From the sequence record MN988561.1: a stretch of DNA of 64,000 nt; one strand, given 5' to 3'. Position numbers and translations under genes: made by a program. This document shows positions 25,733 to 34,492 of the stretch, piece by piece. Numbering within the stretch: position 1 is the first letter of the stretch; each line of letters opens with the position of its first letter. The notes under the pieces are model-generated. The model saw only the letters and a program-made list of their open reading frames with translations, made no database searches and was not told the DNA's origin.

Positions 25733-26152
25733 TTGACTACAGTCGCATATCGTAATGGTATTTTAGCAGCAGACTCATTAATCAACGTGTCAGGTACTCG
25801 TGTAGGGAAGATAGTTAAGGTACGTCGTATTAACGACTACCTCGTAGGATTCTCAGGTGATGTGGCTTGTTCCATGAGATTCATCAGAGGATTTGAACTA
25901 TCTGAATTTAAGTATCCAGTTCCTAGTGATATGACTGCACTGATCGTTGATCGTAAAAACAGAGTCATGAGAGTCGAAGGTGGAGAGTTCTTTGAATTTC
26001 TGAGAACTGACTATGACTCTATTGGTAGTGGATTTAACTTTGCACTAGGTGCTATGGCTCATGGAGCTAATGCAGTAGATGCTGTTAAATGTGCTATGAA
26101 GCATGATGTATATACAGGTGGACGTATTATGTCTATCTCGTTTAAGGATTAA
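25733..26152 (+). CDS. Ntn-hydrolase (HslV/proteasome-beta-like) peptidase
   Basis: TTG start giving (M)TTVAY...AADS; GFSGD; SIGSG...ALGAM..GA.A..AV..A...D..TGG. Confidence 0.8.
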   Translation: MTTVAYRNGILAADSLINVSGTRVGKIVKVRRINDYLVGFSGDVACSMRFIRGFELSEFKYPVPSDMTALIVDRKNRVMRVEGGEFFEFLRTDYDSIGSGFNFALGAMAHGANAVDAVKCAMKHDVYTGGRIMSISFKD

Positions 26153-26153
26153 T

Positions 26154-26606
26154 ATGAATCGCAGATTATTTTTATCAGCATTAGCGTCTACCTTATTACT
26201 ATCCTCGACTCCTGCATTCTCTATTCTAGAAAACGATATTGCTGAAGTACCTCCTCTCATGAAGTTAAGGTACCGTCAAATCGTTAATCGTATTAGAGAT
26301 GCTATCCTCACATCCTACCTCGATACAGAGGAAGAGTCAGATAAGACTCAGAAGCGTAAGTATATTGCGAGTTACGCTACCAATCTCCTGAACTACTACA
26401 AAGACAATCGTATCATCCACGACTACGGAGCACTTGTCTACAATACAGTTCAATACGGTACTTTCACTCCGATGAGTGAGGAGACTGTAGTATCAATCTG
26501 TGTTGAGCTCGTGAAAGATGCTAAAGTCTACATGATATTCGCTCCGTACTATGTTGAAAGAGATCCTGATCTCGTTTTGGCTGAGCAATATACCTCGACA
26601 CAATAG
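26154..26606 (+). CDS. Tat-signal protein with a tail-sheath C-terminal-like segment
   Basis: MNRRLFLSALASTLLLSSTPAFS; RQIVNRIRDAI...LLNYYKDNRIIHDY resembles the sheath C-terminal domain pattern. Confidence 0.5.
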   Translation: MNRRLFLSALASTLLLSSTPAFSILENDIAEVPPLMKLRYRQIVNRIRDAILTSYLDTEEESDKTQKRKYIASYATNLLNYYKDNRIIHDYGALVYNTVQYGTFTPMSEETVVSICVELVKDAKVYMIFAPYYVERDPDLVLAEQYTSTQ

Positions 26607-27282: not shown

Positions 27283-27326
27283 ATGCCGTATCTGGGATGA
27301 GGGTCCTAGGTACGGCATTTATTTTT
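27283..27326 (+). terminator. Intrinsic terminator
   Basis: ATGCCGTATCTGGGA / TCCTAGGTACGGCAT 15-bp stem then TTATTTTT. Confidence 0.85.
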
Positions 27327-28162
27327 GCCTATATGAACCTGAGGGAGATTAAAATGAATACTCGTATGGTCAATATCAAATGGCCTAGTGGTAAAGTCGA
27401 AGCTTATCCATTCGACGAGGTAGATTATCCTACGAGATACGGACCTCTACCTGTACTCATGCCACCTGAGATTCCTGGATGGAAGATTAGGAATACTGGT
27501 ACTGAGTGGATTGCAATTGTTGATGAGGATTATGTTAATGAAGACTCGTGAAGAAGATCTCGAGCAAGCACTGAAGTGGACTCTTCAGTACATCGATGCG
27601 ATTCCTAAAGATATCGATCTACCTACGATGCCAGGATTCGATCGAGACTACGTTGATAGTCTTCTGACTCCTGTTATCGTACCGAGATACAGTCAAGACC
27701 TGACTCTTCAAGATAAGATGACATTGATTCAGGATATCGATGTAAATGCTTGTATCGAGAAAGGAGTGGCTCACGGATACTATCATTTCAATTCTAGGAT
27801 TAGTCTCTGGAATGAGCATAGTGAGAAGATGGTACCCTATCCATTCAGATTAGTACCTGAAGCAGTCACATATGACGTGTTTGAATTGATGACGAATAAG
27901 TATATAGTTCTTTCATTCAGACGACAAGTCAATGAGAATATCTCATGCTTCAAATGGAATGGTGAAAGATTCATCAAAGTATCTCGCAGCAAGTACAAGT
28001 GGATGGATAGATGAGTGAAGCTCAGAAAGAATTAGCTCGGAAGGTCATGGAGATGAAACATGGTGGTAGGTACAACATCATGGGACTCTTCAAGAGGAAG
28101 CCTCAGTGGGTAGAAAATAAAGAGCTACCGAATCGATTCAGGACTAAGAAGAGGAAGAGTTA

Positions 28163-28966
28163 ATGTACTGGATTCTGCAGGACTTCGAGGACAATCATAA
28201 ACTCGGAGACGTTCTCGAGAGAATGGGTAAGGAGTATTCCTACCACAAGGTCGTACCATTCGTAGGTGAGCTCATGCCTAAGCCTACGGACATTGTTGAA
28301 CTCGACCGTGTGGTCATGTTTGGGTCATATAGTCTGAGACATTACGCTAAGAAGCATGGATATACTCCAGGAGTATTTAAACTCAATCCGTACTTCGATG
28401 AATCAAGATGGTGGCCATATCTTCTGAATGGTCCTCACAATATGAAGACTGCTGAGCTCAGAGATTTGTTGTATGAACTTCAGATCAATCCTCAGGAAGC
28501 ATACTTCATACGTCCTGTCGAGGATAGTAAGGAGATTGCAGGTCGAGTAATGGATCGTCAAGAGATCATCGACATGGTTGAAGGAGTACTAGCTCTCGAA
28601 CCTAATGAGTTGATCGGAGGGTCTCTCGCTCCTCAGACAAGAATGATGTTCGGTGAACCTCAGAAGATCACTCGTGAGTGGAGACTCTGGGTAGTTAACG
28701 ATAAGATCATTACTGCAAGTCTCTACAAGGAAGGATCTCGTGTAGTCTATCGAGAAGAACTGGATCCGTATGCTGAGGAGTTCGCTAAGTTCGTTATCTC
28801 TCTGAATCCTAAGTACTCTCCTGCATATGTTCTTGACATTTGTCGTACGAGAGATAGCTACAAGATCATTGAGACGAACTGCATTAATGCTGCAGGGTTC
28901 TATGCTGCTGATCTTCAGAAGCTAGTGATGGCTATCGAAGAACTCAACCACTGGGATATCGTATGA
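28163..28966 (+). CDS. ATP-grasp domain protein (DUF4343/R2K-like)
   Basis: YFIRPVEDSKEIAG, EWRLWVVNDKIITASLY, YVLDIC, IIETNCINAAGFY. Confidence 0.85.
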   Translation: MYWILQDFEDNHKLGDVLERMGKEYSYHKVVPFVGELMPKPTDIVELDRVVMFGSYSLRHYAKKHGYTPGVFKLNPYFDESRWWPYLLNGPHNMKTAELRDLLYELQINPQEAYFIRPVEDSKEIAGRVMDRQEIIDMVEGVLALEPNELIGGSLAPQTRMMFGEPQKITREWRLWVVNDKIITASLYKEGSRVVYREELDPYAEEFAKFVISLNPKYSPAYVLDICRTRDSYKIIETNCINAAGFYAADLQKLVMAIEELNHWDIV

Positions 28967-29286
28967 ATCGTCGATCATTTATGTTAGGTCTCTTAGGTAC
29001 GACTGTCTCAGCATCTCTACCTAAGATTCCATCTGCACCTATATCAGGTGATGTCGGTATGTTCTATTGTCCATACATTCCAGATTTGACAGGAGTGTAC
29101 TTATCTGATGTACCACCTGTAACGTACATTACTAGCTTATCTCAATTCGTCAGTCTGTATGGACGTCCGACTAGTAATGCCACATATGTCTTAGATCTTG
29201 AGACTAACAAATTAGAACTAGAAAATTATATGGAAGAAAGAGGATATGAGAAAGTCATTGCAGAATCGAGTCATGGAAGGACTTAA
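28963..29286 (+). CDS. Tat-signal protein carrying gp23-like and gp18-like fragments
   Basis: MNRRSFMLGLLG; DVGMFYCPYIP; YITSLSQFVSLYGRPT. Confidence 0.55.
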   Translation: MNRRSFMLGLLGTTVSASLPKIPSAPISGDVGMFYCPYIPDLTGVYLSDVPPVTYITSLSQFVSLYGRPTSNATYVLDLETNKLELENYMEERGYEKVIAESSHGRT

Positions 29287-29523
29287 TAATCTCCGTCGAA
29301 ACATCGCTAGCTACCCGTTCATCTGCTATACGAAAGGATTGACATATCCTCCTCGATCTGTAGAGGTAGATTTCTCTCCATGTAAACGATTTGAATTGAG
29401 TAATCGTGTCGTATGGATGTTCAAAACTCCTGATGAGATGCGTCAATTCAAGAGAACATACGTGACTATCGACAATAGTATGGGGAATTATTCTCCTGAA
29501 TCAGCGTATTATCCGAATGAGGA

Positions 29524-29564
29524 TAGGTGCAGTTAAGGTGTATAAAGGATTCTTCTTCAGGAAG
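29524..29564 (+). promoter_or_regulatory. Bipartite motif copy 8
   Basis: TAGGTGCAGTT-13nt-GATTCTTCTTCAGGAAG. Confidence 0.78.
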
Positions 29565-34057: not shown

Positions 34058-34492
34058 ATGGAATTGTCAAGACGTAATCTGATTGTCGGATCTGCTGCAG
34101 TACTTGCTATGAGTGCAGTACCTGTAGTAGCAACTGAGATCGTAGAGAGAAAGATCAGTCCTGATCTTATTGTACCTGATGTCATGAAACTATCGATCAG
34201 TCGTGACGAGTACAGGTTCGCTAACTATGAGATGAACACTTGGACCTATGTCTACGACTGGATGGAGAGATGGTTTCTTGACGAGAATGGTAAGATCACA
34301 TCTATCCAATCCGTCCATCGTATTCGAGATAAAGAAATCTACGATCGATGGGTTTATGAAACAGGTCGATGGAATATTCCTCCTCATATTGTATTCGGTG
34401 GAGCCATCGTAGCAGGTGAAGGTGACTTTCTTTTCTATCAGAAATGGGAAGATCATACCAAGATGCTTCTACGTACTGGACAACTATCTTAA
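34058..34492 (+). CDS. Tat-signal protein
   Basis: MELSRRNLIVGSAAVLAMSAVPVVA. Confidence 0.6.
   Translation: MELSRRNLIVGSAAVLAMSAVPVVATEIVERKISPDLIVPDVMKLSISRDEYRFANYEMNTWTYVYDWMERWFLDENGKITSIQSVHRIRDKEIYDRWVYETGRWNIPPHIVFGGAIVAGEGDFLFYQKWEDHTKMLLRTGQLS

Follow-up and report, generated by a model that had tools for sequence, protein, structure and literature searches.

The window, by which we mean the whole 64,000-nucleotide stretch of DNA analysed here, matches bases 1-64000 of Rhizobium phage RHph_TM61 (MN988561.1, about 203 kb) letter for letter; this phage belongs to the genus Cuauhnahuacvirus in the Kleczkowskaviridae. At positions 28963..29286 of the plus strand lies EVB64_066, a mini-gene of 107 codons plus stop that starts with ATG and whose 107-aa product (QIG77653.1) is annotated as a 'hypothetical protein'. 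An earlier reading made from the letters of the DNA, hereafter the sequence-only reading, had described this product as an export signal stitched to fragments of the major capsid and tail sheath proteins, and had quoted three peptides to that effect. The open reading frame and all three peptides are present and the translation is exact: MNRRSFMLGLLG occupies residues 1-12, DVGMFYCPYIPDL residues 30-42 and PVTYITSLSQFVSLYGRPTSNATY residues 52-75.

EVB64_066 sits in a long run of small genes on the same strand. Its upstream neighbor, EVB64_065 (28163..28966, plus strand), encodes an R2K-clade ATP-grasp enzyme (DUF4343; Pfam R2K_3 2.9e-19; phrog_7313 1.6e-59), the stop codon of which overlaps the start of EVB64_066 in the sequence ATGA, and at the other end the small gene EVB64_067 (29273..29536, plus strand), for which no family match was found, starts in an overlap with the end of EVB64_066. 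The strongest terminator-like site between 25.5 and 32.5 kb is a hairpin with a 16-bp stem and a T-run (27283..27318, plus strand), located between EVB64_061 and EVB64_062. Just downstream of it begins the close-packed block 27354-29536, which includes EVB64_066 and, judging from gene spacing, is probably an operon; sigma-70 promoters were found in smaller number than in shuffled sequence. Genes of the EVB64_065 type also occur in two phages of Sinorhizobium, phiN3 (57% identity) and Phosso; many jumbo phages (Rak2-like, Brevundimonas, Caulobacter) carry more distant relatives. In both phiN3 and Phosso the genes downstream of the ATP-grasp gene are unrelated to EVB64_066, and the pairing is thus absent from them.

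Conservation of EVB64_066

The gene is carried by all of the sequenced Cuauhnahuacvirus records (10/10), with amino-acid identities of 97-100%. In four pairwise comparisons the synonymous and non-synonymous differences amounted to 12/4 (against phage Y65), 7/3, 9/3 and 7/2, and pN/pS was about 0.1. Since EVB64_066 overlaps the preceding gene at its start codon, is conserved in ten genomes and has mostly synonymous substitutions, it is a real gene under purifying selection and more than a chance open frame. It is nevertheless an orphan confined to Cuauhnahuacvirus: an indexed search of 5.8 billion clustered proteins returned no homologues outside its own cluster, phmmer, run exhaustively on 1.84 billion representative proteins, found none outside the genus, and neither PHROGs nor NCBIfam contained a match. 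The sole other candidate homologue was P0002, a tandem-repeat protein in which seven weak matches add up to the score, and it was discarded as an artefact.

Between positions 25963 and 32283 of the window, compared with the corresponding loci L009-L012, divergence among members of the genus varies gene by gene. The ATP-grasp gene has a pS of 0.25 against TM2_3B and of 0.024 against Y65, and the mini-gene has a pS of 0.09-0.16 against all four relatives, including the otherwise nearly identical TM39. Such patchy divergence suggests recombination mosaicism within the genus.

The twin-arginine-type N-terminus

Residues 1-29 (28963..29049, plus strand) resemble a signal peptide, both in comparison with the Pfam TAT_signal model and in a rule-based scan. 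The two arginines are residues 3-4 (28969-28974), in the context N-R-R-S-F-M-L in TM61 and N-R-R-S-F-L-L in the relatives Y65, TM2_3B and TM3_3_6, where residue 7 is a leucine. This context is of the S/T-R-R-x-F-L-K kind that marks Tat signals. The arginines are followed by 16 uncharged residues, a stretch above the minimum of about 13 for an h-region and too short for a membrane helix, and Lys21 falls in the c-region; two candidate signal-peptidase sites can be read, V-S-A with cleavage after residue 17 and I-S-G with cleavage after residue 29. TAT_signal (PF10518) is the top Pfam match of the protein, with an E-value of 0.069 over 24736 models, or about 3e-6 for a single model, and the full-length protein scores 13.6 bits and its first 30 aa alone 17.1 bits, both below the curated cutoff of 22.7 bits. 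No match was obtained with the NCBIfam TAT model.

With Tat signals the arrangement shares a short positive n-region, a pair of arginines at the border between the n- and h-regions followed by x-F-hydrophobic, a 16-residue uncharged and mildly hydrophobic stretch with many Gly, Ser and Thr residues, and a c-region that contains a basic residue and small-residue sites that are candidates for signal peptidase I. These features agree with the definition of a Tat signal given in a review of the pathway (PMC13673990). Unlike typical Tat signals, the n-region of EVB64_066 is only two residues long, the profile score stays below the cutoff and a match of the TIGR type is missing. The twin-arginine N-terminus proposed in the sequence-only reading is thus upheld with a sub-cutoff score, and we take it as a probable twin-arginine-type signal from which export of the protein would follow. 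Most Tat signals can also drive export through Sec (PMC13673990) and, because the sequence cannot separate the two, the route is given here as Tat or Sec.

In the rule-based scan the same type of N-terminus was found in only 5 of the 1932 ATG-start ORFs of the genome, and three of these five are annotated genes within 8 kb of one another: EVB64_066 itself, the small gene EVB64_059 (26154-26606) and EVB64_082 (34058-34492). The last of these scores 17.4-21.0 bits with TAT_signal, against the same cutoff, belongs to phrog_23456 and faintly resembles the C-terminal domain of TonB, which is periplasmic (E 0.27). No paralogy of EVB64_066 with EVB64_059 or EVB64_082 was found.

A capsid-signature-like peptide

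Directly after the putative signal, residues 30-42 (29050..29088, plus strand) resemble the C-terminal signature of Gp23-type capsid proteins by BLASTP, by a Gp23 profile and by hhalign. In pairwise alignments, residues 30-76 of EVB64_066 matched KVP40 gp23 441-490, and residues 30-90 matched the S-H34 capsid protein 390-457. As these pairs came from a search, the likeness was calibrated with a profile built from the C-terminal 130 residues of 122 members of the Gp23 family, run on the 3016 six-frame ORFs of the genome. The capsid gene of the phage ranked first in this profile (E 6e-29), EVB64_066 second (E 0.03) and the third ORF reached an E-value of 4.2; the score of EVB64_066, 11.8-12.2 bits, was reached by none of the shuffled sequences (0/20000). 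Likewise, hhalign against the Gp23 signature gave 85% (P 6e-6) over 12 columns, corresponding to residues 30-41, with 0.2% for the reversed control. In these 12 positions EVB64_066 matches S-H34 390-401 and KVP40 gp23 441-452, and it shares with them the Asp that precedes the Phe by four residues. After the final Pro, EVB64_066 has Asp-Leu where the capsid proteins have Leu.

The similarity is confined to this short segment. A profile of the capsid region after the motif scored -1.6 bits with EVB64_066, and 12886 of 20000 shuffles (64%) were as good; Pfam Gp23 (PF07068) gave no match at E<=10. In contrast to the Gp23 capsids, EVB64_066 has no HK97-fold domain, and what lies upstream of the motif is the putative signal peptide. 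On these comparisons the capsid likeness is a real motif of 12-13 residues, not a capsid domain or fragment, since no signal remains once the motif is removed. The gp23 likeness noticed in the sequence-only reading is therefore genuine and local, and stands above chance with the profile, the shuffles and hhalign alike.

The phage's own Gp23-family capsid gene lies outside the window (L004:30614-32023, minus strand) and served as positive control, with a Pfam Gp23 E-value of 3.4e-16. Its product carries a divergent C-terminal signature. Aligned with EVB64_066 it yields a single patch of nine residues, four of them identical (E 0.34), and the motif of EVB64_066 is closer to the capsids of cyanophages and vibriophages than to that of its own phage. 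A permissive tblastn search of all phage genomes returned weak matches (E 6-9) at the extreme C-terminus of the capsid protein, in two T4-like lineages.

Recurrence of the core peptide in other small ORFs

Sequence collections, the sizes of which are known inexactly, were scanned for DNA able to encode the core peptide of EVB64_066. In two further families of small ORFs, both unrelated to EVB64_066, the scan found the core, FYCPYIPD, in frame and with a hydrophobic residue after it. The first is an 81-aa ORF that ends with the nine-residue core (L007:2037-2282, on contig IMGVR_UViG_3300026116_000209, the same contig as L008 and L098); it was found on 3 contigs and lies in a replication module of a PA5oct-like jumbo myovirus. 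The second is a family of 45/46 aa (L099:606-746 and L221:5535-5672, minus strand), with the core in the middle of the protein, found on 37 marine contigs whose flanks, at L099 and L221, match T4-like cyanophages. The whole C-terminal half of the latter family is invariant, and therefore the motif is not singled out there. The genes at L099 and L221 are part of arrays in which small ORFs overlap, many of them with acidic ends of the type ...VEE. No relatives of the L007 and L221 ORFs were found among cultured phages, and the carriers at L007, L099 and L221 have no signal peptide.

The controls returned next to nothing: there were 0 matches in 596 Gb of bacterial genomes, 0 matches in viral contigs to an equally probable Val variant followed by Asp, and 1 match, out of frame, to a related control pattern. 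Among the viral loci listed with the seven-residue core, 79/80 are true capsid genes, and all of these (79/79) have an Asp at position -4. This residue, although it was outside the search pattern, is shared by TM61, L007 and L099, whereas L221 has Glu at -4 and Asp at -3. Other matches to the core, among them L097, L179 and L220, are out of frame or in junk frames and look like chance; L097 and L179 have no acidic residue at the position of the Asp. Between core carriers 3-5 of the 8 third-codon positions are identical, against about 3.3 expected, and as these positions vary the core is conserved at the level of the peptide; a DNA-level element behind the motif is ruled out by the same variation. 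The recurrence of the core is no more than suggestive, given that the lineages are three and the sizes of the collections scanned inexact. No mention of the motif, or of decoys made from capsid fragments, was found in the literature.

The sheath-like patch and other weak matches

A second local similarity, to the tail sheath, covers residues 53-74 (29119..29184, plus strand). Residues 53-69 align with KVP40 gp18 41-57, with 8/17 identities and a pairwise E-value of 0.003; no such patch exists in the sheath of S-H34 or in that of the phage itself, the latter encoded at L004:27058-28881 (minus strand). A profile of T4-type sheaths, constructed from 51 distinct N-termini and able to detect the true sheath of the phage at an E-value of 0.0016, scored 3.4 bits with EVB64_066 (E 12, rank 12 of 3016 ORFs), a score that 38 of 20000 shuffles reached. 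With an N-terminal profile of the phage's own sheath family the score was -1.6 bits and 30% of the shuffles were as good, and hhalign gave 6% for the T4-type sheaths and 0.7% for the own family. Neither the Pfam sheath families (PF04984, PF17482) nor a tblastn search of phage genomes with EVB64_066 produced a sheath match at E<=10. By these calibrated comparisons the sheath likeness is at chance level. The gp18 N-terminal resemblance claimed in the sequence-only reading consequently stands as a local string match to KVP40 but fails as a signal above chance, and it exemplifies how motif likenesses can be real strings and yet be due to chance.

A single-sequence AlphaFold2 prediction of EVB64_066 had a pLDDT of 39.5 and is an unusable model, and a PDB sequence search returned no capsid or sheath chain at E<=10. 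Two other candidates were set aside. The D-2-hydroxyacid dehydrogenase NAD-binding domain of McyI aligned with residues 8-83 in the PDB search at an E-value of 1.2 and found no Pfam support at E<=10, and DUF3502 scored 13.6-14.7 bits (E 0.04-0.1), below its cutoff of 24.4.

Discussion

Based on the putative signal, the conservation of the gene and its surroundings, we hypothesize that EVB64_066 is a small exported accessory protein, specific to its lineage and functional, and neither a relic nor a fusion of virion genes, a proposal to which we give an even chance of being correct. The gene would belong to the phage's block of small same-strand genes of early type, and would presumably be expressed early in infection. 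Its first ~29 residues would act as a twin-arginine-type signal peptide, through which the protein would reach the cell envelope or periplasm via Tat or else via Sec, and after cleavage at one of the candidate sites an acidic mature part would remain, about 78-90 residues in length. Directly after the signal would stand the 13-residue peptide, the core of which corresponds to the invariant Gp23-type C-terminal capsid signature. The mature protein may then act at the envelope, following the logic of two T4 proteins that act in the periplasm, Spackle and the antiholin RI (PMC8385771). As in these two proteins, a precursor of ~100 residues with an N-terminal signal and a small soluble mature part would be encoded among the non-structural genes of a large myovirus. 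In contrast to them, EVB64_066 shares no sequence relationship with either (no PHROG, Pfam or PDB match), and the likeness is one of logic only. Against the proposal speak the Tat score below the cutoff and the empty NCBIfam result; moreover, the carriers of the core at L007 and at L099/L221 have no signal peptide, with which a shared periplasmic role for the motif fits poorly. As a phage orphan that probably carries an export signal, EVB64_066 is of an ordinary kind. As for the superinfection-exclusion and decoy functions put forward in the sequence-only reading, they are speculation, and the decoy is kept alive only by the finding that other small phage ORFs carry the motif too.

That recurrence also speaks for a second explanation, in which the 13-residue peptide would mimic the capsid segment and, acting as a competitor or decoy, bind a partner of this segment such as a host sensor of capsid protein or a folding or assembly factor; the N-terminus of EVB64_066 may then be no export signal at all. 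The core is in frame in two unrelated families of small ORFs, the Asp at -4 is shared with the capsid genes by TM61, L007 and L099 without having been part of the search pattern, the controls were nearly empty, and the varying third-codon positions point to conservation of the peptide. Nevertheless, the independent lineages are only three and, with collection sizes known inexactly, any estimate of enrichment is rough; in the 45-aa family the entire C-terminal half is invariant. Furthermore, the motif of TM61 is nearer to foreign capsids than to its own, which would be odd in a mimic of the self-capsid, the TM61 copy lies behind an apparent export signal and would thus be kept away from capsid assembly, and the motif is absent from the literature. 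On balance, we consider a capsid-motif mimic unlikely. If it were correct, regulators or decoys that work by mimicking a motif would form a new class, with a bearing on the control of capsid assembly or on the handling of host defences that sense the capsid. Should the recurrence hold in a proper census, it would point to short-motif mimicry of a capsid protein, and it is tempting, if doubtful, to generalize that large myoviruses of the Gp23 type repeatedly carry small non-structural proteins displaying the capsid signature as mimics that compete for its partners.

A third explanation regards EVB64_066 as an ordinary fast-evolving orphan in which both virion likenesses are coincidental. At the scale of whole databases neither likeness is significant, the capsid matches in tblastn having E-values of 6-9 and Pfam and PDB containing no virion matches at E<=10; unrelated proteins such as McyI and DUF3502 match with like strength, and the hypothesis was drawn from the same sequence that is used to test it. 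Against coincidence, the capsid motif beats 20000 of 20000 shuffles and is outscored in the genome by the capsid gene alone, hhalign separates it widely from its reversed control, and the core is found in frame in other small phage ORFs. We therefore regard pure coincidence as improbable for the pair of likenesses, even though one of the two, that to the sheath, is at chance level.

The overlap with the upstream gene raises the further question of whether EVB64_066 is a partner or substrate of the R2K ATP-grasp enzyme, translationally coupled to it. ATP-grasp ligases of other clades modify small peptides encoded next to them, and the stop and start codons of EVB64_065 and EVB64_066 overlap within one close-packed block. 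Such a relationship is nonetheless very unlikely, as the pairing is kept neither in phiN3, the enzyme of which is 57% identical, nor in Phosso, and an exported protein would be an improbable substrate for a cytoplasmic ligase. The mosaic or recombination relic of the sequence-only reading, in which the 3' piece of a capsid gene and the 5' piece of a sheath gene would have been joined in frame behind a captured signal, could draw on the adjoining order of the capsid-like and sheath-like patches and on the fact that both find their best match in KVP40, but it is scarcely credible, given that the capsid-side similarity ends after 12 residues and the sheath side is at chance level, that neither patch resembles the phage's own capsid (4/9 residues) or sheath (-1.6 bits) genes, that the Pfam Gp23 and sheath families gave no match at E<=10, an outcome which the same reading had itself held to count against it, and that purifying selection on the whole frame argues against a decaying relic.

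Returning to EVB64_066 as a putative exported accessory protein, its type of N-terminus does not stand isolated in this genome. A single region appears to hold the genes for at least three small proteins with N-termini of the twin-arginine type and, to our knowledge, phage proteins routed through Tat have rarely been described.
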